In this document: positions 12,897 through 53,100 of the stretch, piece by piece
How positions within the stretch are numbered: position 1 is the stretch's first letter
Layout: every line of letters starts with the position of its first letter
NCBI GenBank assembly: GCA_965202585.1
Contig: OZ241834.1
Coordinates: forward strand, 31,868,001-31,932,000
DNA length: 64,000 nucleotides
Reading direction: 5' to 3'
Origin: Thalia democratica
Lineage: Eukaryota
The notes under the pieces: model-generated
Database searches by the model: none
Seen by the model: only the letters and a program-made list of their open reading frames with translations
Told to the model about the DNA's origin: nothing
Program-made: the position numbers and the translations under genes

Positions 12897-13682
12897 ATGG
12901 ATTCCAGTTCTAAGGAAAATCTACTTCCAATTAATGGTGACAAACCAAGTTTTGAACAACCTAACACAATAATAGAGTCAACTTCACCTGCCATTGACAA
13001 CTTTGAGTATGAGGAGTTTACTGGTGGTAGAAACGGAAGAACGTGCCCCACCTGTCACGGAAGCGGCAGAATATCAAAGGACCATGAGTCAAACGCAGTG
13101 GCAGTGATACCTTACACAGATGACCGGTTAAATCCTTCAAAAACAAAACAGTACGTACTTTTGGCAGTGGTTGTGTGCCTCATTTTGTCAGGATTAAGTC
13201 TGTTTTTTGTTCTTCCACGCTCAACCTCTCTCAGTGACACGCACATAACCAATACTTCCATACTCATACCAGATGAAGAAAATACAGCATATATAAATGT
13301 CACGCACAAGTTCAAAGTTACCAATTACAACTACTTCAGTGTGAAGTTAGTCAACATATCTGTTGAAGCCACGTTTGACTACAAGAAAATATTAGTCGGC
13401 AAGGGTTACTTGCAGTCTCAAGTAAACATTTCCCCACTGAGCAGCCAAATAGTTTCAGTAATGGTTCCAACTATTATGTCCATGGAGAACAACCTTGGGT
13501 TTGTAGCCTTTTATTGTAAGGAATTCGGCTACAGGTTTGCATTGCTCTTAGATGTTCTAATGGAATCTACTTATTTGAATCACAAAGAGGAGAATTCATT
13601 GGAGTCCTACGTCTCCATTGATTGTGGAACTAGGTATTTTGTGCAAAATAAGGGTCAAAACGCTACATATCTTGTAGATTAA
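12897..13682 (+). CDS. TMEM106B: TMEM106 family (TMEM106B-like) type II lysosomal membrane protein, 261 aa, intronless
   Basis: Single ORF: YEEFTG...TCPTCHGSGRI motif, AVIPYTDDRLNPSKTKQYV, TM helix, LEA-2-like luminal domain with NxS/T sites. Confidence 0.93.
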   Translation: MDSSSKENLLPINGDKPSFEQPNTIIESTSPAIDNFEYEEFTGGRNGRTCPTCHGSGRISKDHESNAVAVIPYTDDRLNPSKTKQYVLLAVVVCLILSGLSLFFVLPRSTSLSDTHITNTSILIPDEENTAYINVTHKFKVTNYNYFSVKLVNISVEATFDYKKILVGKGYLQSQVNISPLSSQIVSVMVPTIMSMENNLGFVAFYCKEFGYRFALLLDVLMESTYLNHKEENSLESYVSIDCGTRYFVQNKGQNATYLVD

Positions 13683-20861: not shown

Positions 20862-23800
20862 GTAAACTAATAAATACACCTTGTAATATCTAAAATTTTC
20901 TATATACTATATATTTTTTTTGTTTTATACCTTTTTTATTTTAAAAATCTAAAAGCATATAACTGAATTTGAAAAATGTTTTTACTGACATTCAAACAGT
21001 AGAACCACACGAGGAAAACAAAAAAATACCAAAGCCGTTTTTGGACCCTGAACTGCAGGACATCCGGAAATCATCGGAACTCCGCTACATCATTGAGGAG
21101 GAACTGTTTCGTCACAATGGGATGACTGACGATGACGCCAGAAACTTTTCGGATCACTACCCTTCCCCTCAGCCCTTCGACCCCTACAAGACCCCCTTCC
21201 CTGTCAGGTGGCGATTTTAAACAAAAAGTAGTAATTTTATTTTCAGTAAATAATAAACATTATGCATTCATATGATGTCAGCTTGAGTTTTTGAGTTTAG
21301 ATTTGTGTTTAGTTTCTGTTTTAATTTTGTCTTTTTTATCAAGTTTTAACAAGACCCCCTTCCCTTTCAGATAGAATTGAAAAATATTTGTAAAATTAAA
21401 ACTAAATATTAATGATGTTATTCATACTTAGTAGTTGATGTTATGAGGTCACATGATTTCAGTTTGAAGTTTTGTATGGGTTGTAAAATTGATTTGGTGC
21501 TTAATTTCTGTTTTTTATTTTGTGTTTTTCGACAAGTTTAAGGACAAAACCATGTATTGAAAATACATTGTTTTATTAATTTTTCTTACACAAGAATTTG
21601 GATAAGCTGTTTATTTTACAGTTATTTTGGGATAAGTCTACGTTTTTTTAATGTAAAAGCCTGCCAAAATAGTTTAAAAAATATCTAAAATGCGTAAATG
21701 CAGAACTTCTTATTAATACTTTTAACAATTGAAATAAAGTTTTGAATAATTATGTTAAGCTAAAGTTAATTCAAAGTTTTATTAAAAAAAATGTTTTATA
21801 TTTATGAACAAGCCATAAGTGCAAATATATATTTGAATATCTAAACAATGTACCTCAAAACATTATAAAAGACAACAAAATATTACTTAATTATAAACTT
21901 TTCCTTAATTTATATAAAACAAGTCCTGTCCAAGCATAATATCAGTCTTAAAACCCATTTAAAATATCAGTCTGTTTTGAGGCAGATTTACTAATTTAAG
22001 CCTACTTAAGCTAATAATTTACAAATATTTATCACAGGATGGGGAAGAAGTTGAACTTGTGCGTCCAACCGGACAAGTTCGCGAGCACCGAGTTCCTGAA
22101 GGTTCAAAACTTCCTTCACGCACCACCGCCCACCGTCAAGAAACAGTGCGATGCCATTAAAGGTTTGTTTATGTAGTTTTATAAGTCACGCAGACTTGCA
22201 TAAAAAAAATTTGTTCTTTGATCATCATTTTATTTAAAAAATAAAACTCATTAGAATTTTATCCCCTCCTAGATTTATTTTGCTCGTGACCTCAAATTTT
22301 AAGAAAGCGGTCTTAAAATACATAGAAATTTATGTGATACAAGATTTTGAAATATTATCACTTATCTATCGAAAAACAGGATTCACAAAAGTTTTTTGTA
22401 AGTCAATATAAAAATTGAATTAGAAAAAACAGAAAATTAAAAGGAGATAGCTTAAAATATGTTTTTAATGTTGTGAATTATGTTGATGATTGAAATATCG
22501 AATATTAAAATATTTTTTTTAAACAGTCTACTTTCGCCTTTGTAGCTTGCACCTTCATGCAGTAGCTGTTTACCTATCAAACTATGATCCCTTAAATAGC
22601 AAAAGCTACAAAAAGCTTAGTTAAGCTGTAAGAAGTAGTATTAAAGTTATGTGAAAACCAAGATTAACCCATCTGTGGTTTTAAAATAACTATATATTTA
22701 TTGTTTTTTGAATTAACATAGCTCAAATTTTAAATATATATTTTTTGTAACTATATGATAATAATATATGTGATAGTTAGTCCTCATATAAAAATAAAAT
22801 TTGACATTTTTTTCTACACTGCTAAAACCGCATTGTGGGTTGCAACTTTTTTGTAAGTAACTTTCTAAAACTAAATTCATAACATACCAGTGGCGTCGCG
22901 TGGTATATTTTTTAGGTGGTGCAGAATTTAAAAAAAATCCCCTACTTTAAAACTTTTTTTTATCTTAAATAAAGACTTTTTTCTATAACAATTACAATAA
23001 ATTGCTATAAATTTAAAAGACTCAAAAAATGTTAACTTACTTATGAGTATTAATTTTTAAGAAGGCTTTAAAGTTTTAACTAACAGTAGAAAAAATTTAG
23101 ACAAATCAAATTTTTATTATATTGAAAAATACAGCAACTTTATTAGTTCTTTTTTTTGACTCAACTTTATTTAAAAAATATTTGATTAAACATCATACTA
23201 AGAATGGTTATGTTACTAATGTTTGATTTAACAAAATAATAAATGTCTTATTAGACTTGACAAGAAAATTAAAAAGTCTACAAACAAAACAAAAAATGTT
23301 TTGTACAAACTGCAAGTTTATTTTAAGTAAAATTTATTTTACTAAGTAGAAAATAATTGCTTATTTATTGCTAAATATTGAAAAAATAAACGAGTATTAA
23401 CTTATAACTAATTAAAACTGTTGATGTTTGAAAAAAAAAAGCTTGACTACTAAGTTGAAAACACAAAAGTAAAATAAGCAAGCTCATAAATATCAATTAT
23501 TACGAAGTCTCTAACTTACAAGTCAGAATTTAGATTAAACAGACTAATATTATAATAAGAAAATACAGCAAATGCAACAATATTTCTCTTAGCCTCAACT
23601 TTAGTTTAAAAATATTGGATTAATTAAATATCAAACTATTTATATTAGTTTTACTAATATTTAATTAAAAAAACCTATTTATACTTGGCAAGTAAATTAA
23701 AAAGTCTACAAACAAATAAAACGTTGTGTACAAATTGAATTTTTTTTAAAGAATAACTTACATTACTCAGTAAAGAAATTTTAAAGAATTTAAAAATACA

Positions 23801-40100: not shown

Positions 40101-40384
40101 AAATGTCTTTTTAACATTTTTAAACTAAAGCAGTAATTTCTACTAACTATTTTTAAATATTATACAGAGACTGAAAACCTAACTACAATCAAATTAAATA
40201 AAATTACCAAAAAAATTTAACTTGAAATATATTTTTGCTCGGCGGGCCACATTTACATACTCGCGGGCCACAAAATTTTCTTTCGCGGGCCGCATTCCAT
40301 TTAAAAAAATAACGAGGTCGCGGGCCGCAGATTTACCCTTCGCGGGCCGCAATTGGCCCGCGGGCCGCAGTTTGCCGACCCCTG
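37150..40384 (+). mobile_element. 3.2-kb hAT (Buster/Charlie-type) transposon between MRPS35 and INF2, defective, with nested CAGGGTTGCC-family pieces (~37730, ~38820-39042, ~39177)
   Basis: TIR CAGGGGTCGGCA / TGCCGACCCCTG; perfect 8-bp TSD gtatatag; many cgcgggcc subterminal motifs. Confidence 0.93.
38340..38778 (+). pseudogene. Decayed Buster/SPIN/GTF2IRD2-type transposase fragment
   Basis: SFKVAKFIT*NEIPF...KEFMLAV and IAHLRIFIRDV...EFLGLVSKQSTKTGEI resemble SYxVAxxIAKxxKPF and AQLLIFIRGV...EELLxLxS...TTGEDI. Confidence 0.65.
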
Positions 40385-40577
40385 GTATATAGTCTAGGCA
40401 TAATATAAAACATGAAAAAACTTGATGTTTTGAAGTTAAGGATTGTTGAATGTTGAACTAAAGTTGAAAAAAACATACTATTAGTAGAATATGTAACCAC
40501 AAACATTTAATATCTTTGTTCGAACTAAGTTTAAAAAATACTGCAAGAGTTAGAAATAACTAAAATTAAACAATTTT

Positions 40578-41176
40578 TTAAGAAGTAGACTCGCCTGTAT
40601 TCGTTTTACCGATCTGTTTAGTGTTTTTGTTAGCATTCTGGTTCTTTCCCCTGATCCTGCTGGCTATGTTTAGAAGAGAGTACCTCAGTGGGGTCTTCCT
40701 GCGAAACGCCGGGTTCTGGGTCGCGTTTTGGGGGGTTTTCGGGTTCTGCTTGGCGTCTTGGGGCCTAGTGATCTGGACCGTCCTCTTGGGCTGGGCCAGT
40801 CGGTACAATCGGGACGAGATGGTGGATTTGGAGGAGGCTGAGGAGGAGGGTCGGGAGGTGTTTTGGGAGGAAAAATTTTGAGTTGAAGGTTTTTGGACGG
40901 AACTTTTTGGAACGGCCGTTTTTTGGGTGGAACTTTTTGGAACGGTCGTTTTTTGGGTGGAACTTTTCGGGCCAGCGGTTTGAGGTTTTGTTTTGATCGG
41001 TCTCGTCCTGGACTGACTCGTAGCGGGCCGGCTTGAACTTTTCTGGGGAGTCGGGATTGGCGTGGTTCGCGGGCTGGTTGCCGGGTTTGAGGCTTTCAGG
41101 TTTGAGGTTTTACGGGGTGGTTTGAAGGGTTTTGAGGTTGAAACTGGGTTGGGTGATCGCAGCCTACTTCGTGGTT
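40578..41176 (-). CDS. INF2: INF2 terminal exon: ~200-aa basic Ser/Pro/Lys/Thr-rich non-CAAX tail
   Basis: catctag|AA CCA CGA...; phase 1 matches the preceding donor; open for 199 codons; includes the ORF-track entry 40578..40808 and a 30-nt internal repeat ([10 protein letters not shown], ~40890-40980). Confidence 0.85.
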
Positions 41177-44100
41177 CTAGATGTTATAAAAAATAGGTTA
41201 TTTAAACCTTCTTTTTTTAGTTAGAGCTAATTTTTTAGTTAATGATAAAAATATAATTTTTTCAATCTTTGAAAGGTGTTAAGCTTTTTTACGGTTTGAT
41301 AGTAAAAAGAACAAAAATCACTTTGGTACTTAATAAAAGTAAAGTTTAAAATTGTAGGTTTTGAAAAATATTATTTAGATAACACTTTATATTAACGTAA
41401 AGTTTCAACACACAACTAAATAAACTTTTTTACTATACATGCAGCAGTAGTGTTATTAAAAAAAAAGGATTAAGCGCATGCAAAACATAAAAAGTAAAAT
41501 ATAACTTGTAGAAACATTTTTTAGTTCTTAAATTAAAGACTGTATCAACGATAAGTGATTGTTATACAATTAAGTTTATGAAATAAAACTACATCCTAAA
41601 AAACAAATTAGATTTAGTATATTTAAAAGTAATTAAAAAATAAAAAATAAAACTAAAGTTCTATTTAATGTAGTTATTTGGAAACAAAACAATGTAATAT
41701 ATACAACAATCGCATGCAAACTTTAATTATATAATTAATTATTAATATAATACTTTTAAAATTTAGTTTGTCTGCCAACTAGTCAGAACATTTTACTGTC
41801 TACTAAACTTGGAATAAACTACGTCCAACTTTCGTTGACACCCTTTTATCAGGTTCTTATAACTTTTACCATTAATAATTACCACTGGAAATAAGTTCGT
41901 TATATTTTTCAATAACTTCTGAAGTACACAAAAGTTAGTTTTTGAATTAAATAAGTGAAATATTTTCAAAAGTGAAACTTAAGTCTACACCGAAAATTAA
42001 TGACAAAATACCTTACTTTTTTGGGGAATTATTACCTAAGACGTCTTAAAATCTATTGAATAAGGCATCCTGAAATAAAATGAGCTATTTTTATATTAAG
42101 AAACAATACTAGAAATACAAAAGATAAAATAATGCAGGCTGTTCCTAAAACTATTTTCAGCCCAGTTACTAAACTAATGAAGCTTTAAAGTAAAATAGAA
42201 ATAAATAAAAAAGAATTAAAAAATCGTTTATATATAAAAATTGATCTTACAAAAAAATAGTTGAGATTTAATTGAATAACAGTAAAAATTTCAAAAGGAG
42301 AAGCATATGGTGATTTCATAGGTCAAAAGATATTATCCTTCAAGTTTATTTTTTATTTAACATAAAATATAATAAAGAAGTTTTATCAATCTTATGCAAT
42401 ACACATTTAGTTTTTGTTGAAGTGTTTTAACTATACAAAAACTTCTCAACTAAATCTATCCTATAATAGCTTTTTTTTCCCTATTTAATTGCCTAAATGT
42501 AGTTAAATATAGTTTAGTTTCAAACAACAAACAAGTTAATGTGCTTTCTCATTCTATAAAGCTCTAGTGTTTGTATTTTTACTCTTACAGGTATTTCTTA
42601 TTGAATGGTACAGTTGGAATTCTTGTTTTTTATCTTTTTTGATTTTCTTCCTTTTGCATTGCGTTTGAAAAGTTCTTTAAAAATGGTTTACTATAGATTT
42701 TGTCTATTTAATTATAAAGCTTAAAATGAAATTTAATAACGTTATACGGTTTTTAAAAATGTATATTTTTAATGTACTTAAGAAATTTAAACAAAAACTT
42801 GTGCAGCTATAAAATCAAAAAAGATGTCTATAAAAAAAACTACGAAAACTACTAATATAATGTTATAGCCAACGCGATTTTTTAATGTACTATGTAAAAT
42901 AATGCTTGCGTGTTATAAAGTAGTTATTCCTCACACTTTTTTTTTTCTATAAACATAGAGTAAGTAAATTAACGCAAGTTAGTATTATGCTTACATTAAA
43001 GTACTCATTTAACAAATGTAAAAGTTGTATATCTTGAAACTTACTTTTTATACTTAATTCTCTGAAATAGAACATACTACAGGTTTAAGTCTTATTTCTT
43101 AATCACAGTTCATTAAGTACTAATTAAGTGTTACAAAGCGAATATTTTAATGCTTGAAGCAGTTCGGTTTTATTTTCTCAATAAAATTATAGCATTACTT
43201 TGTTACTAAAAATTTTATTCAGCTGGCCACAAGTGTTAACAATTTCTTATGACTTTTATAAAATAACTTCTAATACATGTACTTATAGTAGTTTAAAAAC
43301 AGTTTTGATTGTAATCACCAAGCCTTTAAACTACCACCATACTTAAAGTTTTAAATTACAAGCTTACTACTAAATATTGTTTATTTAATTTAGTTCTTTA
43401 CATAAAGATACACTTTACAGAAATTTCAAGTAGCTTTTATTATAATATCGCATTAAGGGTATAAAAAGCTTATGTAAACTGAAATTACGATAAGCCTATA
43501 AATGCTTTCAGAAAATTATTAATTGAAAAAAATATCCAACGACTAGTCATAAATATTTAAATTAGAAGTAAGAAAAAATTGTAGATTTAACTGCTTTGTA
43601 ATTTAATGTTAAAAGTTACGTAACGATTCAATTTTCATATTACTACGAACATGTGTATTGTTAGTTTTATGGAATGATTACAAGTTTTACCACCTAAAAC
43701 TATTCATTAACACCTAACAGGAATCGATTTTTTTTTGCGTAAATAACACTTAATCAAAACACTTTGCATATACTCGAATAAGAATGTACGAACACTTTGT
43801 TCAAGCGTTAGATTTTTTTAAGATTTTTTGAGGTTAAAAATTAAGTTAGATCCTACATAAGAACAGTCAGCAGAAAATAGCATGCTGATCACAAAAAGTT
43901 GATTGTGACGTACTGTTGATTTACTTTTATGACGTATAATCGATCGCGTCGAAAAATTCTAAGTCTTCGTCTTCGCTTGAGCTCGATCCGTTCCAAGTTG
44001 GTTCTTTTTTGTCGTTATATTTATATGTTTGTGGAAATTTATCAAATTTATCAAAATTAAAAAAAAACCATATATAGTTCTATGAAAATACAAAAGTTAT

Positions 44101-47100
44101 GTATAGCTTTGTATTTTGTTTATAGCTAAAAATAAGACTAATAGTTTGAGTCACTTGAATTTGATTAATAATGAAAATTTTAGGATAATTTAATGGATTT
44201 AATTAAAAATCATTAGAAAAATTCAATTAAAGTTTTATCGATTTTTTTTCAACTAAAAACGTGGAATATGATTGCAAATTTTCGTTTTGATGTAACTTGA
44301 TGCTTAATTTTTTATTTACAGTGTTTTTGAAATCATTTGAGAAATTGAATTGATATTCAATTAATTTCGATAAAAACTAAAAAAACGATTGCATTTTTTT
44401 CATCAAGTAAAATCATATGTACTTTTATTTCAAATGTAACTTACTGCTGGTCTCCTGACTCGTTGCAGCGGTAGACGCAGGTTTTTTCGGATCCACTGAA
44501 GATGAAGCCAATTGATTTGCTTTCTTCTGCGTCAGTCCCGTTGAGTGTCTTTCCTTCGCATTCCTCTGAAAGTTAACTTTCTGCGGCCTGCCCACCGTGG
44601 ACTTCGACCTGGGATTGTTCCTGGAGAAATTGGTGTCGGGCTGTTTCAACTTGGACTCGTTGCTTTTGCTCGCCACTTTTTTCGCTTCTGTTTTCGGTTG
44701 CGCAGACTCGTTTTTAACGTTTACTTTGGGCTTTTGCGTAACTTCACTTGGTTTTTCAATATTTTTACTTTCTGAAACTTGAGCTGCTTTTGGCGTGTCA
44801 GGTCTATTTTCTTCCACTTCACCTGAATTTCCTTTAGTTGAACTTTCACCAGACTGCTCTAAACTTTCTTTGGGGTCTCTTGTTTCTTTAACATCGGAAG
44901 TTTTTTCTTCTGCTGTTTGGTCCGGTAGCACTTTTTCACTACATTTTTCTTCACTGTCTGAAGAAGCCTCTTTCGTTGGTGGAATTTTTACAGTTGAACT
45001 TAGAATTTCAGTTTCTCTTACCTTATCTTTGTTTTGAGGCGTATTAGTTTCAACTGCAGTGTTTTCAATAGCAGGCTTGCTACTTACATTATTTTCGTCT
45101 TTAAACGTGGTTTCAACCAAGCTTTCTTCAGTGTCTTTAGTTTGAGACTTGGTAGTAAAACTATTTTCAGTTTCTTTATTTCCAGCATCATCTTGCTCAT
45201 TTTCGCTCTCACTTGAGCTTGAACTCGACGAACTGCTTCGGCTTTTGTTGCTGAGCTTCTTCTGAAGTTCGTCTAAAACCTTGTTTTGGTTTGCTTGGTG
45301 GGCTTTAACGTTTGATAAAATTGATTCTGAATTCGTTTTAGTCTTAAGGTCCTCATTGCTACTTGATTTGTCGTTGCTGTCTGCTTTAGTATTTTCTACA
45401 ACCTGATCACCTTCTTTGTTTAACTTATCCCCAACAGGTTTACCAGAAGCTGGTTTAATATCATCTAAATCTTTGTTGACGTATTGAATTGCTATACCTT
45501 TAATGTTATTATTATTTTTGTTTGAATTGTTTCCTGATTTTTCATTAGTTTTTGGTTCTATAGACTCTGTTTTCTCTAATTTTTCATCAGTTGCTTCTAC
45601 TTTAGTTTCTTTAACTTCGTTTCGATCGTTATCTACTGATTTTTCGTTCTCTTTCTTATCACTTTTATCAGTTACAACATGATCGACCTTGTGTGTATCT
45701 TTGTTGTCAGCACTTGGTTCATCTTTTACTTCTAACGCGTTCGTTTTATCTTCATCTTCAGCAATCTTCACCAACTTGTTTGGGTCGTCATTATCGTTGA
45801 CTTCTTTCTCTTGTCGCCTAAAGGATCTGTTAGATGAAAAATATTCATAAACGAATTACAACAAAGGTTTAATTTTTTTTGGATTATAAAAGCAAATAAA
45901 CAGCAAATAAAGTCAACGTTACTCATACAGGCTTACATTCAGTTTTACAGAGATTATTCTAAATATTCATCTAACATTTTTGTGTAGCATGAAATGTTTT
46001 TTACGTAGTTTACAAGTTAAAAGGCTTAAAATTTTGTGTAAAATACTTTTTTATTAAAATACTAGTCAGAGTTAAAATCATGTAAAAGTCGATCTATAAT
46101 AAATTTTTTTTAGTAGAAAAACAAACTTGATAAGTCTTGGATAAACAATACCTCTTATAACAAACATTTGTAACTAAATAATTAAACAATTTTTTTGTCA
46201 AGTTTTACAAAGACAAACTTTTTAACAGATCCCAGTCTGCTGTTTTTTCTCCCAACCGGACCTGCGGTCTTCTTAAGCGTGAATCCTCTTTTAATATCAC
46301 CCAGCAATTGGTCGATGATGCAAACCTGTATGGATAACATATATACTTAAAAGATTTTGTGTTTTACACAATAAAAAAGTCAAAATACTTGTTTCTTGTG
46401 ATTAAATCGTTATTTTTTAAACAAATAAACAACAAACACAAATATGTCTAAACTTTATAAATTTAAAGTCTTTAATTTGCGTAATACAAAGCTGCTATAC
46501 AACAAAAGTAAAAAAAATACTAAGCGAGTTGTAATTGAAATAATAAAAAAACAAAGATTTTTTTTTTCGCTCACATCAGACGGCGGCGGGGCTCTTGATT
46601 TCTTCTTGAACCCTCCCGGGTTGTTCTTCTCCTTTTCACGCATGGCCGCCTCTCGCTTCCTCTTCTTCTCTTCTTGAACTTCCCGCTCTTTGTTTTCTTT
46701 CAGCGCTTTTTCAATCTGTAATTTTTTTTATTTCTTTTTAAAATTTTGTACGGAAAACATTTTACTAACACAACACGTTTTCGTTAATTTACTCATACAA
46801 ACAACTGCAGTAAATATTTTTTTTTACCTAAATAAAGGTATTGTCTGAATATGCTAAAAAAAAACAAGCAACACTAAACTGTTTAAAGCTTTTGTTTTTA
46901 TTATAGCAGTAGACTTTACAGTATCATTAATGTTTGATAGAAGGTAAAATCAAGTTTACAGAATGCTGCACTTTAAAGCCAATATAAATAAAAAAGAGAC
47001 ATTCAGTCGTTACTTTATTTAAAACTACTTAATTACCTAATAACTTAGTCAAAACTATATATAGTGAATATCCTTTATGACTTGTCAGTGTATTTGATCA

Positions 47101-50100
47101 TCGTGCAAACTTTAAACAATTTTAAAGTAATAAACTCTTTAAAAACTATTTTATTTGTCCACTCATGTTTCACACACTTGATTGCAGAAGTTGGAGATTG
47201 TAGAGAAGCAGTCCTCCAGCTTGAACTTGTTCACATCCTCCACAATGTACTTGGCGATGATCTTCCTCAGCCTCTCCACCTCTGCGAAGTCCTCCTCGAT
47301 CCGATGGAACCTGGCGGTGGCCTGGGCAAGGAACGCGCTGAACTGCTCCTTGATGTCGTCGCTCCCCTTGTTCACCTGTTTTTCATTTATTTATAAAGTT
47401 TAAAATTTTTGTTCACCTGTTAGGTTTTGAGTCGTTGTTGAGGTTTCTTGTGACATTTTTGTGGTTAAGTTTTATAAAAACTTGATAACATTCTTATAAA
47501 ACGAAATTAACTGCTAAGAAGGTTTTAGTTTTTCCTAAAATTTATAACAAACAGTTTTCAAGACAAAAACAAGAATTTTAAACAGTTCATTTCGATAATC
47601 CACTATAAAGGCGTTACAGTAAATACAAAATTTTTTTACCAGTACTTTCTAAACTACTACAAAAATCACCATTCTTTCGAGCTTCTTGATATTGGCTGAC
47701 AATTTCGTGAAGTCGTTCTTCAGCTGCTCAACCGACACCGTCCTGCACCGAACCACGTCCTTCAGGTCCTCCGGGATCTCCAGCAGCTGCTTGTGGTTCC
47801 TGCTCGCCTCCTCCATCACAACGTGGAGGAGGGTCATCCGAGGCTTGTTCGACTTCGTCTCGGCCAGCTGGTTTTAGGTTAATGATTAATTTTTAATCAA
47901 CACTGAAATTTGTATACTTGTACTAATGTTAAACTAAATACTATATTAAATAATTTGCATAAAGAAATGTTTATTCAAGTTGACTAACGTTTCAATTTGA
48001 CTACAATAACAAAATTAAATTAATTGAGTAGTTAAACAGCTATTTTCACCAAATTGTTATTTATTAGTTTAAGCACGGTATGAAGCTTTAACAAATTTTG
48101 GTAAAAACGAAGATGGTACAAAATCTTAAATCTATGACTAAAATAACGCATACTGTTAGTAAATATAATTTTTTAAAACTAAAGTGTGTATTTTTAGTTA
48201 ATGTTGAGTTTGAAACTTTATCAAACCTTAAGAAGAGACGTGAACTTGAATGCGAATGCTCCTCCCGAATGAGCTCCGTGATTCATGAAGTTGCCTGTCT
48301 TCAAGATCAGCAGGAACAAGTTTTCCAGCTTCTTGCAGTTCTTGATTGCTGGGAAACACAATGTATAGGGTTTTTTTTTTGAAGAAAAATATTTAACACG
48401 ACTAGACTCGCAATGTTATTTGAATATTAAAGACAACATTTTTTTCCTTTAAAGCTAAATTTGTAAAAAGTTAAGTAGTTATCAAAAAATTGATAAGTTA
48501 AAACAAATAAAAAGTTAATAAAAATAAAGTTAAAAACGTTGAGTTATAACTATTTTAATTGCGTTTTATAATTTTAAATTACCATTTGTCAAGACTTAAC
48601 TCGGTTGTAAAAACAAAAATTTTTTACAAACGTAAAAAAACGTAATCAAAAAGTTAATAAAAATAAAGTTAAAAACGTTGAGTTATAACTATTTTAATTG
48701 CGTTTTATAATTTTAAATTACCATTTGTCAAGACTTAACTCGGTTGTAAAAACAAAAAATTTTTAAAAACGTAAAAAAGCATAATCAAAATGAAAAACTC
48801 ACCGTTACAAGCAGAGATGCTCCTGCTCAGAGGCGGCTCGATGGACTCGATCTCCTCCTCAAACAGCTCCCTGGCGATGCACGCCTCAATCCTCAGGTTG
48901 TAGTCCTGCAGGTGGGACAGGTGCAGGAAGTACTTGTCGCAGTTGGCCAGCAACGCGGGGTCCCCCTTGTACGCCTTGATGTTTTCCAGCTCCAGTTTTT
49001 CCGGCTTGAACTTCACCATCCCTTTCAGCTTTTCTTCGGCTATATTAGGTTGACTTATGCTTTATACAGTGACAAGTAAGTACAAGTTACTAAAGTTACA
49101 CAAGTTTAAAGAAAGCAGCACCTAACTCGCTTTGGCTAAAGTAAGAAAAAATATGTTTTATATTCATGCTATAAATTACTAAAGAACATTCAACCCACTT
49201 AAAACGTCCCTATCTCCGTTCTTCAAAGCTTCAATGATCTTCTCATTCGGAAGGCGAAACTGCTTCAGAAATATGTTGATGTTCAAGCTTCTGCGGGAGT
49301 CGACAAAAGACACCTTTGATAGAATATTTTAAGTTATTAGTACTGCACTTGTTAACTGAGCTGTTAAAGCATTTCAGCTATCATAATCGACTTGATAACT
49401 TATAAGCATTTCAAAAAGTAGTATCTTATAGTTGAATTTACTGTACTTCTTTTTAACAAGTTAAAAAAAAAACTTCTGTTGGAGCAGCCTTTTTAGTTTC
49501 CTTCTTTTCTTTCTTCTGAATGATTTTTTGAGCAAACAGTTCTTCAATTTTTTCATAATTTGGGTGCAAGTCATTGCTGCTTTTTTCCATAGATTCCCAA
49601 ATACTATCGGTGCTGTACAAATAAATATAATCTAACACTTGATCTTAGTAACAAAAACTCTAATGAAAAATTGTTTTACATTAAAAGACTAAAAATTTCT
49701 TACAAAAATAACTGTAAGTATAGAAAAGAGTTATTAAATATTTAACAGGAAAGTTAGCTTGAAAATTGTTAAATATTCTAAATATTTTTTTTTGCATTAG
49801 GATTTATTAGAAGTTAGGCTCATCATAAATTAACCTACCTGACAGTATCACTTATCAACTTCTTAATAAGAAAGCTTATCTTTATCATAAAAAGACCTAC
49901 CTGACAGTGACTGATTTTTCAGGAATTTTCTGCCAGTTGAGCTTGCGTAGCTTCTTGGTCGGTTTCGGCACCGACACCGCCCTCCTCACAGGTGGCGGGG
50001 GTGCTGCCTGTCGGGCGTACGCTCTTGGCACTCCTGGTGGTAACGGTATGCCTGGAGCAGCTGGTATGCCAGGCGGTGCTGGAATTCCTGGTATTCCTGG

Positions 50101-53100
50101 AGGAGGTGGAATTCCTGGTATTCCTGGAGGAGGTGGAATTCCTGGTATTCCTGGAGGTGGTGGAATACCTGGTATTCCAGGAGGTGGTGGTATACCTGGT
50201 AAAGCAGGTGGAGGAGGTATACCTGGAATAGCAGGAGGTGGTGGTATACCTGGAATTGCTGGCGGGGGTGGTATACCTGGAATTGCTGGCGGGGGTGGTA
50301 TACCTGGTATAGCAGGAGGTGGTGGTATACCTGGAATTGCTGGCGGGGGTGGTATACCTGGTATAGCAGGAGGTGGTGGTATACCTGGAATTGCGGGAGG
50401 TGGAGGTATACCGGGAATAGGTGGAGGTGGTGGTATACCTGGAATTGCTGGCGGGGGTGGTATACCTAGAATTGCTGGCGGGGGTGGTATACCTGGTATA
50501 GCAGGAGGTGGTGGTATACCTGGAATTGAGGGAGGTGGAGGTATACCGGGAATAGGTGGAGGTGGTGGTATACCTGGAATGGCAGGAGGTGGAGGTATTC
50601 CCGGAATCGCTGGAGGTGGAGGTATACCTGGTATAGCTGGTGGAGGTGGTATACCTGGAATGGGTGATGGGGGAGGTATTGAAGCAGGAGTTGATTCCAC
50701 TTTCGTATTGATTTGTGGTGCAACCAAAACTTTTTTGCTTCCGAGTGAAACTTGAACGCTTTTATTAACCACGCTTGCCGTTTTCTTAACTTCAGTTCTG
50801 CTCTTGGGCTTCAGGAACTTTCTTGCTTCTTTCTCCGTTTCAACGGACGTTAAAGACTGGGCGACTTCGGTTACTACTTCCCACAGAACTTTCGACAATG
50901 CAGGCCCGTCTTTGCTTTCAGGCTTTTCTGCTTCTTCATCGCTGTCTGCTTCCACCTCCAAGTCAAACTGAAGCAGGCATTGAAGCAGCGTTAGAAGCTG
51001 GTTTGACTCTGGCTTGTTGTATATCTGTATATTATTGTTTATTGAATGACAAAAAAAGCGCACAAAATATTTGGTCCTAGGACCTAGTGCACGAAAAAAC
51101 CTTTCGGTTATCGAGTCATACACCACTTGGATACAGTTTAACGTCTTGTCCAGGACAAAGTATTCTATAAAAAGAATGTTATATATATATAAAGTATAAA
51201 ACTCTAAAAGTATATTAAATAATTTTATAAACAACAAGTTTTAGCAGCATTAGTTTATTGCAACTTAATTTTATTAAGTTTTAACTATCTTTGTCTTTAT
51301 TATCTTTTTTTTTTTTGGTTTTAAAACTAAAACTAACATTACTCAAGGGTAAAAAATGTATTTAATTATACCTTTTTTACAAAAATAATTTGTAAATAAA
51401 ACTCTAGTCCTGATAACTTAAAGTCTGACTAAATAGCCGTTGAGTTTCTTTTGAAAAAAAAAAACTACTTAAAGTTTCAATGTTCCAACCTTGTTGAAAA
51501 CAGCTGAAAAAAGGTCTTGATGACTGTTTATGTCGAGACCTTCCTGTCCCATCAGGTGGGAGACCTGAAGTTCATCCTCTTCTTTTCGTTCGTTGAAAAC
51601 CTCAAGCTGAATCGCCAAATCTTCAGACTCGTTTTGACTTCAATTATTTTAAAATAATTTAGCAATTTTTGTAGACTTAAAAGTTTACATTTAAAAAGTA
51701 TTTAATTAATTTTCATTAAGTTTTTTACTTAACTTAAATTTTATTAGGCAAAAAGTTTAGTTAGAGTTTATTCGAATAAGACAGCATTTTTAAGTTGCCT
51801 CTTTAAATATTTTTCCTATGATGTTCTCAAATATTTTTTCATGTACTAGAGCTAAACAAAGAGACAAAACTAAACTATTTATATCTTTTTTGAATTAAGT
51901 TTATAGAAGCTCCACAATTTTTTCATAGGCAGATCATTTTAAGCAAATATTTTTAAAGTTATTAAACTTGTGCAAAAGTTAATTTATAACTAGTCGTTGA
52001 ACAACTGTTCTTTATAGATGTAAATATTAAGTAATATCTAATGATTTGTTTGATTGTAATAAGCTTTATATTATAAAGTGGTTGAAAAATCAAGATGGAA
52101 GAAAAAAAATATTTTCATTAATCTTGTACAAATAGCCAACAATTGTTTTTTATACAATGTAATTTTTATTTTTATTCGATGTTTATAGATAACAATTTTT
52201 AAATTAATTATTAAGATTACCAGTACGATAAAGCTTTGCGTCGAAAGGAAAACAAATATTTTTAAACAAGAACCACAGTTGAGTAGAATGTGTGTTTCCA
52301 TGTGTGATAAGGTTATATAAGCTTATTAACTTTTCTTTAAGTTTATGCTTGAACTTTCACTAAATTTTAACGCAAAAAAAAATCAACTAACTTTTTTTTC
52401 CTATTTCTGATCAGTAATATATAAGCAGATATATGTAAAAAGGAAGAAATATCATCTATTATTATCTAGGTATATATGTTTAGCAAATTATCTTAGATAA
52501 AGTTTTTTTTTGTTTACAGTTTGATTAAAAATGAAAAATAGGGTTCTAAAATTTCAGAAAAAGAAACTAAAGAAAAAAGTTCTATAACACTTAAAACTGT
52601 TTTAAAGCGTTTATTTTTTTAAATTTTATGTATATAATATATAAATGAGGCGGTAATAACTAGAAGTGTGTCTGTTATAAATAACCTTCTTTATTCAAAA
52701 AAAAAGCAATCGCTATATATAAGTTTAAGTATCAAACATTTTAATTCTGTATTTTTTTAAACAAATCAGGATTTATAAAACGTAACTTAAACTGAAAAAT
52801 GTTGTTTATTAAGGTAAAATATATTTACAAAGTTTTTTTAAGCAATGCATGCAAATAGATACTTTACTAATCATGCGTTACAACAATTAAGGTTTTTTAG
52901 ATTGAATTTTTTTTAAAGAATACTAAAAAATTATTTAATTTTCTAACGCAAACTTTTCTAAAAATAGTTTTTTTCCCAAAACATTTTGTACTCCGATTAA
53001 AAACTCATTTTTTAACTACGTCTTTTAAACAAACGAAAAAGAGTTATACACAGTTATTTTATAAAGTTTGTTATCTATTTTTGACAACTTTGTAATCACA

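Follow-up and report, generated by a model that had tools for sequence, protein, structure and literature searches.

The INF2 locus and its alternative C-terminal exon

We analysed a stretch of 64,000 nucleotides of the Thalia democratica genome (contig OZ241834.1, positions 31,868,001 to 31,932,000, hereafter the window), the minus strand of which carries a gene of the formin INF2 with several alternative C-terminal exons. [quoted passage not shown] The domain order along the gene, DID/FH3 - FH1 - FH2 - WH2/DAD, is that of INF2 (Table 1), and the FH2 exons were recognized by Pfam with E=4.3e-11 and 1.9e-6. The N-terminal exon shares 72% identity with the Ciona locus, and the top full-length matches of an exhaustive search with this exon were the 'inverted formin-2' proteins of Ciona intestinalis, C. 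savignyi and Styela clava, followed by those of echinoderms (Patiria, Anneissia), hemichordates and amphioxus. The FH2-exon search returned as its sole match one near-identical fragment on a 698-nt contig. By these comparisons the gene is assigned to tunicate INF2, the nearest named protein being the inverted formin-2 of Ciona intestinalis.

The large exon that precedes the alternative exons has an open reading frame (ORF) of 449 codons, 443 of them complete within the exon part that extends to the donor at 44445, and is matched by RNA at 90-97% identity. No Pfam domain was detected in these 443 residues, and the low-complexity region ahead of the FFAT tail, in a cytosolic protein, is probably disordered. 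A protein search with the final 200 residues of this exon gave no match, under a length filter that left out the full ORF, and is uninformative. The exon ends ...CCAGC A|GTAAGT at 44445 (GT at 44444-44443), which makes its donor phase 1. After splicing from 44445 to 44003, the final A joins AA to form a lysine codon, and a 25-residue in-frame tail followed by TAA is obtained. A one-block translation of 43925-44003 is out of frame because the first codon is split across the splice junction. An initial annotation made from the sequence had proposed this 25-residue minus-strand frame, with EFFDAID following SSSSEDEDL, and translation from the phase-1 donor at 44445 confirmed it. The minus strand reads ...cgacaaaaaag|AACCAACTTGG...ACGTCATAAAA|gtaaat across the cassette, with two untranslated bases (43926-43925) between the stop and the donor. 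The GC-richer island that the same annotation had placed in an AT-rich intron was found again, with 41.8% GC in the exon against 20.0% and 24.8% in the upstream and downstream parts of the intron, respectively.

The tail sequence is single-copy within the 802-Mb genome. Six-frame translation of the window yielded one core of the form [ED][FY][FY]D[AC]x[EDST], which is EFFDAID; in 300 first-order Markov simulations of composition-matched sequences (64 kb each) the mean number of such cores was 0.017, and none had an acidic flank.

RNA evidence came from one marine metatranscriptome sample, sequenced in two runs (X1 and X2) and available as short contigs. These contigs cover exons of the INF2 gene at about 90-97% identity and come from a close relative (~91% identical) or a divergent haplotype. 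Inclusion of the cassette is documented by record 2 of X1 (127 nt), in which positions 20-98 align exactly to 43925-44003 with 7 differences, the flanks of 19 and 29 nt not being collinear with the genome. The two visible differences out of these seven are a synonymous change (GAA>GAG) and an exchange within the acidic tract (GAA>GAC, E>D). A contig of X2 (depth 34.4) also covers the exon, and record 9 of X2 (depth 8.8) aligns to 43954-43846, through the donor, with 92.7% identity. Because the downstream flank can thus be aligned in the same organism, the break of X1 record 2 at 43925 reflects a splice junction and not sequence divergence. The start of X2 record 9, 29 nt ahead of the donor, would be the branch point expected of a k=31 graph.

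The same contigs settle the choice of the acceptor. The initial annotation had pointed out that the in-frame acceptor at 44003 is A-rich, had considered a stronger one at 44080 that would require the T-run at 44059-44067 to be T8, and had proposed looking for RNA entering at 44003 or 44079. The metatranscriptome match begins exactly at 44003, so that the A-rich acceptor is the one used. The run is T9 in the assembly, the T8 correction is not needed, and the acceptor near 44080 was ruled out.

Skipping of the cassette was seen in both runs. In X1 a contig (depth 10.7) joins 44445 to 42674, and in X2 a loose end at 42671, when reverse-complemented, corresponds to the final 19 nt of the large exon joined to the opening bases of the CAAX exon. 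The CAAX exon is itself followed by a junction from 42589 to 41176, since a loose end of X1 at 42595 agrees, but for 1 mismatch, with the sequence from 41174 on. No RNA junction to the second candidate CAAX exon, (R)CLIQ* at 42036-42069, appeared in the contigs shown. RNA depth is zero in the intron bins 42100-42299, 42700-42899 and 43300-43699, and the RNA signal is therefore exon-specific. Contig depths of the FFAT and CAAX exons were 34.4 and ~39 in X2 and 10.7 and ~11.8 in X1, respectively, which is a poor measure of the isoform ratio. The segment 43925-44003 is a genuine alternatively spliced cassette exon of tunicate INF2 that provides an alternative coding C-terminus; the FFAT and CAAX tails are mutually exclusive and are set by the choice of cassette exon.

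Table 1. Features of the INF2 gene in the window, in the order of transcription.
Feature	Position	Strand	Remarks
INF2-type N-terminal exon	61022-60828	minus	
Drf_FH3 exon	54163-53924	minus	Pfam E=8.7e-13
Poly-Pro FH1 with IPGIPPPP repeats	about 50.7-50.0 kb	minus	
WH2/DAD-like exon	46340-46185	minus	WH2 E=3.3e-4, below the Pfam cut-off
Large low-complexity K/E/S-rich C-terminal exon	44445..45774	minus	5' coordinate is the ORF limit, no mapped acceptor
Cassette acceptor AG	44004..44005	minus	weak, preceding tract A-rich; reads ...CGACAAAAAAG|
FFAT cassette exon, alternative	43925..44003	minus	79 nt; encodes (K) + 24 residues
Ser/acidic tract SSSSEDEDL	43960..43986	minus	4/4 Ser fit the minimal CK2 pattern S-x-x-[DE]
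Predicted FFAT core E1 F2 F3 D4 A5 I6 D7 (EFFDAID)	43939..43959	minus	
TAA stop of the FFAT tail	43927..43929	minus	2 nt ahead of the donor
Cassette donor GT (|GTAAAT)	43923..43924	minus	match of X1 record 2 stops exactly at 43925
Donor read-through segment	43846..43924	minus	retained intron or terminal-exon 3' untranslated region form; lower depth in RNA
CAAX cassette exon (polybasic ...NSNCTIQ*)	42589..42674	minus	encodes (K) + 24 residues; RNA junction 44445->42674
Second candidate CAAX exon, bare (R)CLIQ*	42036..42069	minus	from sequence only
Start of next downstream exon, ctag|AACCACGAAG...	41150..41176	minus	CTIQ exon splices to 41176

Two further observations were made on the nucleic acid data. 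The intron between the large exon and the FFAT exon is covered at 44100-44257 by RNA contigs of low depth (4.7 in X1, 19.5 in X2), which break at 44257 into 204 nt without a match and could represent intron retention, one more alternative exon or a repeat. A DNA run whose organism label is the same as that of the assembly (X3) contains, beside a contig that equals the reference, a second haplotype over 43780-44102 that differs by 18 substitutions and 3 indels over 322 nt (~6%). The level of heterozygosity is very high. Variants that the second haplotype has in common with the metatranscriptome RNA include those at 43877, 43890, 43897 and 43913.

Conservation of the cassette exon among tunicates

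At least 7 of the Ciona RefSeq isoforms listed end with ...GPYICA[DE]FSDEFSSSDEFEDAQDFW (e.g. XP_026693261.1, XP_078494224.1), the tail being ...SSSDEFEDAQDFW. The Ciona isoforms share an exon ending ...KKSTISTSRE and then diverge, the other tails being ...KKKKSLCRVQ* (CAAX), ...EPWTKLKQWFKSL* and long non-CAAX tails. The Ciona locus (L005) carries, one after the other, the WH2 exon, a common exon (phase-1 donor GAA G|GTAAGT), the acidic/aromatic exon (22942-23019), the CAAX exon (23294-23413) and the other tails. The acidic/aromatic exon thus has the same phase and the same order as the cassette of the window, between the variable exon and the CAAX exon. The exon had been described as hidden, which holds for the genome studied here, whereas the Ciona RefSeq models already include the homologous tail in a weaker version (EFEDAQD). 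Another alternative terminal exon of the Ciona locus (L005 23712-23750), with the ending EPWTKLKQWFKSL*, is short, basic/aromatic and looks amphipathic; it would be a fourth possible localisation signal.

A third, tunicate-like lineage was represented by the 3' end of an INF2 gene on an unrelated 1.1-Mb ENA contig (L007-L009). Its FH2 exons are 40-63% identical to those of the window, which makes it about as distant as Ciona. At L009 a 73-nt cassette with a strong polypyrimidine acceptor lies ~0.6 kb past the large exon (donor AAT G|GTACGT, phase 1). It encodes (D)LDSSSSEDEYEDCIDFI (peptide DLDSSSSEDEYEDCIDFI; tail ...SSSSEDEYEDCIDFI*), and its stop is followed 17 nt on by a GTAAGG donor.

The tails of the three tunicates (this window, Ciona and L009) were aligned (alignment A1). 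Invariant residues are S8, S9 and D11 of the window row, within the Ser tract, together with E1, D4 and D7. Conservation of residue class was observed at position 2 (F/Y/F), at position 5 (A/C/A) and directly behind the core (Y/F/F). At position 3, F occurs in this window only, and both Ciona (EFEDAQD) and L009 (EYEDCID) have E. As to the search for EFFDA in related species, which the initial annotation had suggested, a homologous exon exists in two other tunicate lineages, but F3 is absent there. From the aligned tails, the conserved pattern is read as E-[FY]-x-D-[AC]-x-D-[FY] preceded by a Ser/acidic tract, and the canonical FF pair as lineage-specific. No similarity could be detected among the large exons beside the cassette in the window, Ciona and L009, and the conserved acidic residues are encoded by different codons among the lineages. 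This combination of an unalignable neighbouring exon and different codons for conserved acidic residues argues that selection acts on the peptide.

The loci were also scanned without reference to any motif, for C-termini whose last 16 residues include 6 or more acidic and 2 or more aromatic ones. The cassette exon was the single match in each of the 64-kb window, the 35-kb Ciona locus and the 21-kb L009 locus. No such cassette was found in the annotated isoforms of amphioxus, sea star, feather star and acorn worm, nor in the whole gene loci of amphioxus and Patiria. Within the sampled taxa the cassette exon is, as judged by these comparisons, tunicate-specific. A fourth contig (ERZ22157276, L010-L013), with an N-terminal exon 51% identical and a far more divergent FH2, showed no FFAT-like or acidic/aromatic terminal exon within 11.7 kb past its last FH2 exon, and was given no weight in either direction. 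A degenerate DNA pattern for the 13 residues of flank and core gave 0 matches in JGI metagenome contigs, and the only matches of the tail among PDB sequences were chance ones to PsbW (E>=0.1). The Styela clava gene 'inverted formin-2-like' (L006 10001-13081) consists of one ORF of 1026 codons with no intron, ending directly behind the WH2. It looks like a retrocopy without any alternative tails and is uninformative here.

The predicted FFAT motif, its putative receptor and competing explanations

The canonical FFAT motif consists of an acidic flank followed by E-F-F-D-A-x-E, and the conservative exchanges that occur in it naturally are E1>D, F2>Y, F3>Y, D4>E, A5>C and E7>D/S/T (PMC3261905). 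In the same study EFFDAfD with a weaker flank, counted as 0.5 suboptimal elements, gave the strongest targeting to the endoplasmic reticulum (ER), detectable targeting required at most 2 suboptimal elements, and protrudin, with EFKDA-E, bound VAP although its position 3 is non-aromatic (PMC3261905). The EFFDAID of the window agrees with the core E-[FY]-[FY]-[DE]-[AC]-x-[EDST] and departs from EFFDA-E only by E7->D. The six-residue flank SEDEDL comprises 4 acidic residues and 1 Ser, and its charge of 4.5 (D/E=1, S/T=0.5; PMC3261905) equals that of the optimal Osh1 flank EDSDaD. The almost perfect FFAT match claimed at the outset is thus borne out by the published rules, and we estimate that flank and core would fall in the strongest FFAT class, with about 0-0.5 suboptimal elements. 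By similar estimates the Ciona EFEDAQD would be of the protrudin type and the EYEDCID of L009 borderline. Phospho-FFAT motifs carry Ser/Thr at core position 4 (PMC7705450). This variant was ruled out for the cassette, where position 4 is Asp.

A putative receptor is encoded in the same genome. The family PF00635 was matched with 68.7 bits at G000:C2:51037062-51037223, a segment encoding ...CFKVKTTAPRRYCVRPNSG..., which is the VAP consensus sequence. The exon of this VAP carries the canonical FFAT-binding signature FKVKTTAPRRYCVRPNSG, the MSP domain being split over exons. The cassette tail is a real, conserved alternative C-terminus that probably binds VAP.

Inclusion of the cassette introduces an in-frame stop, ending the protein in the FFAT tail and excluding the downstream farnesylation (CAAX) tail. 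The FFAT tail then most probably docks on the MSP domain of the ER protein VAP, which would place INF2 reversibly on the ER or at VAP-defined contact sites independently of prenylation. This binding may be strengthened when the conserved Ser tract, with its context of CK2 type, is phosphorylated. With moderate confidence, we consider the best explanation as a whole to be a real INF2 cassette exon whose conventional FFAT tail would dock on VAP and replace the CAAX anchor. More tentatively, and with some doubt, splicing may switch tunicate INF2 between two ER anchors, a farnesylated polybasic CAAX tail and a CK2-tuned VAP-binding FFAT tail, the latter bringing actin assembly to VAP-marked contacts such as those between ER and mitochondria.

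Several points weigh against docking on VAP in place of the CAAX anchor. The Ciona and L009 motifs are weaker (E3 in both, and also Y2 and C5 in L009), with roughly 1-2.5 suboptimal elements as we estimate them by the Mikitova-Levine scheme, and for this reason the conserved function could be another acidic/aromatic interaction. The RNA comes from the metatranscriptome of a ~91%-identical relative, not from the sequenced animal, in short contigs, and from these we infer which exons the included one is joined to on either side. Should the CAAX exon come next after it, the stop would be located 88 nt ahead of the final mapped junction, and the transcript could be subject to nonsense-mediated decay (NMD).

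The foremost rival, which we hold to be rather unlikely, accepts a real exon and selection on its peptide but has the tail bind a partner other than VAP, for example another reader of acidic-cluster/aromatic motifs or INF2 itself in a regulatory intramolecular contact; the perfect FFAT would then be a coincidence of one lineage. The Glu at position 3 in Ciona and L009, the several suboptimal substitutions in L009 and the aromatic residue conserved after the core (Y/F/F), which lies outside the FFAT definition, would be explained in this way. However, the constrained positions are those to which FFAT gives weight (E1, aromatic 2, D4, A/C 5, acidic 7 and the acidic/Ser flank); A5->C, F2->Y and E7->D have documented precedents in natural FFAT motifs, and protrudin binds VAP with a non-aromatic position 3 (PMC3261905). 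Other short motifs were checked by eye in alignment A1 and rejected, none of them being conserved among the three tails: an LC3-interaction core (F-D-A-I) occurs in this window only, the Trp of an Arp2/3 acidic motif in Ciona only, and a class III PDZ ligand is absent from this window.

The peptide might alternatively be irrelevant, if the cassette were a regulatory 'poison' or unproductive exon whose stop lowers the output of CAAX-INF2, for instance via NMD. The layout is what such an exon would show, with a stop inside the cassette, further junctions after it and a weak A-rich acceptor, and L009 has the same stop-in-cassette arrangement. A poison exon needs the stop alone, however, and here residues are conserved, through different codons, across lineages in which FH2 exons are 40-63% identical and the neighbouring exon cannot be aligned; the depth of FFAT-exon RNA contigs is moreover similar to that of the CAAX exon, although depth is a poor measure. 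We regard this explanation as very unlikely. Least probable of all, and already largely refuted, is a chance intronic frame, with an RNA match that stems from the pre-mRNA or DNA of a relative and ends where it does by coincidence. Metatranscriptomes can indeed contain DNA, and RNA contigs are present in the intron at 44100-44257. Yet the match ends base-exactly at both splice sites, stopping short of the conserved AG and GT, the downstream flank aligns in X2 record 9, most intron bins have zero depth, Ciona has homologous annotated coding exons, and the expectation for such a core is 0.017 per window.

Comparison with known systems and other features of the window

The gene resembles mammalian INF2-CAAX/nonCAAX in family and domain order, and its CAAX exon ends in CTIQ. 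The non-CAAX tail of mammalian INF2 is a short basic peptide, and the corresponding isoform is not known to be ER-enriched. The non-CAAX cassette of the tunicate gene is different in that it encodes a predicted FFAT motif, and the other isoform would here be directed to the ER as well, via VAP and not via a lipid. In mammals, alternative 3' splicing sets the farnesylatable CxIQ ending and ER residence (Ramabhadran et al. 2011 as cited in PMC5748994). The actin burst driven by ER-bound mammalian INF2 brings ER and mitochondria into tighter contact and favours calcium uptake by mitochondria as well as their division; the CAAX form supports ER-mitochondria calcium transfer more than the non-CAAX form, and in INF2-knockout cells the calcium response is restored by over-expression of the tethers VAPB or PTPIP51 (PMC5748994).

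Conventional FFAT clients (OSBP/ORPs, CERT, Nir/rdgB, Rab3GAP1, AKAP220, VPS13A/C, protrudin) are matched by the core EFFDAxD with its acidic/Ser flank, which fits E-F-F-D-A-x-[EDST], and by the low-complexity region. A C-terminal position has precedents in SLC22A15 and Num1 (PMC3261905, PMC11116812). The tunicate case differs in its host, a formin actin nucleator, and in the location of the predicted motif on an alternative exon that competes with a prenylation signal. The Ciona INF2 isoforms have an orthologous phase-1 exon after the variable exon and before the CAAX exon, encoding a Ser tract, acidic residues and E-F-x-D-A-x-D-F before the stop; they differ by the Glu at position 3, which makes the motif a weaker FFAT-like one, and by a longer exon with alternative acceptors, and they are known from automated gene models, for which no account of function was found. 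CK2 phosphorylates serine tracts upstream of the FFAT cores of Chlamydia IncV, in the pattern S-x-x-[DE], and thereby promotes VAP binding (PMC9286742). The tunicate tail shares with the phospho-regulated flanks of IncV and of ACBD5 (bioRxiv 10.1101/2021.11.11.467785) a Ser run directly upstream with S-x-x-[DE], which could add negative charge once phosphorylated, but it differs by four encoded acidic residues that separate the Ser tract from the core. Because these four residues are already in place, phosphorylation would tune binding and not switch it on.

A full-text literature search for FFAT and INF2 retrieved no paper with both terms in title or abstract, and the top matches, judged by title and abstract, look like reviews of contact sites. 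Neither a review of the VAP interactome (PMC8306308) nor PMC7705450 mentions INF2 or formins. The exon itself is already in databases, within the automated Ciona RefSeq models, while the FFAT-type reading of the tail and the canonical version in this species appear to be new. A conserved isoform that swaps a lipid anchor for a VAP-docking motif would tie a formin to the main ER contact-site receptor. If splicing does switch INF2 between two ER anchors, INF2 would become the first formin to act as a direct client of VAP, and the gene would offer a natural experiment on why INF2 needs the ER. It would also be a clean case of a localisation switch by short stop-containing cassette exons, which are easily missed in AT-rich genomes and were only implicit in the automated Ciona models. 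Simple testable constructs follow from this reading, namely tail peptides and FF->AA and S->A/D mutants.

Some other features of the window deserve mention. The FH1 region (49990-50700) is made of ~28 near-perfect tandem IPGIPPPP[APG] units and reaches 52% GC, the maximum of the window. A GC-rich island at 40200-41200 (40% GC against 25% in the region), with gcggcccgcg repeats at 40230-40400, holds on the minus strand the exon beginning at 41176. On its plus strand the island contains an ORF of 86 codons (40621-40881) that is hydrophobic and membrane-like. Finally, a single-exon ORF of 261 codons on the plus strand at 12897-13682, with a CxxC...H motif and a predicted transmembrane stretch, belongs to an unrelated neighbouring gene.

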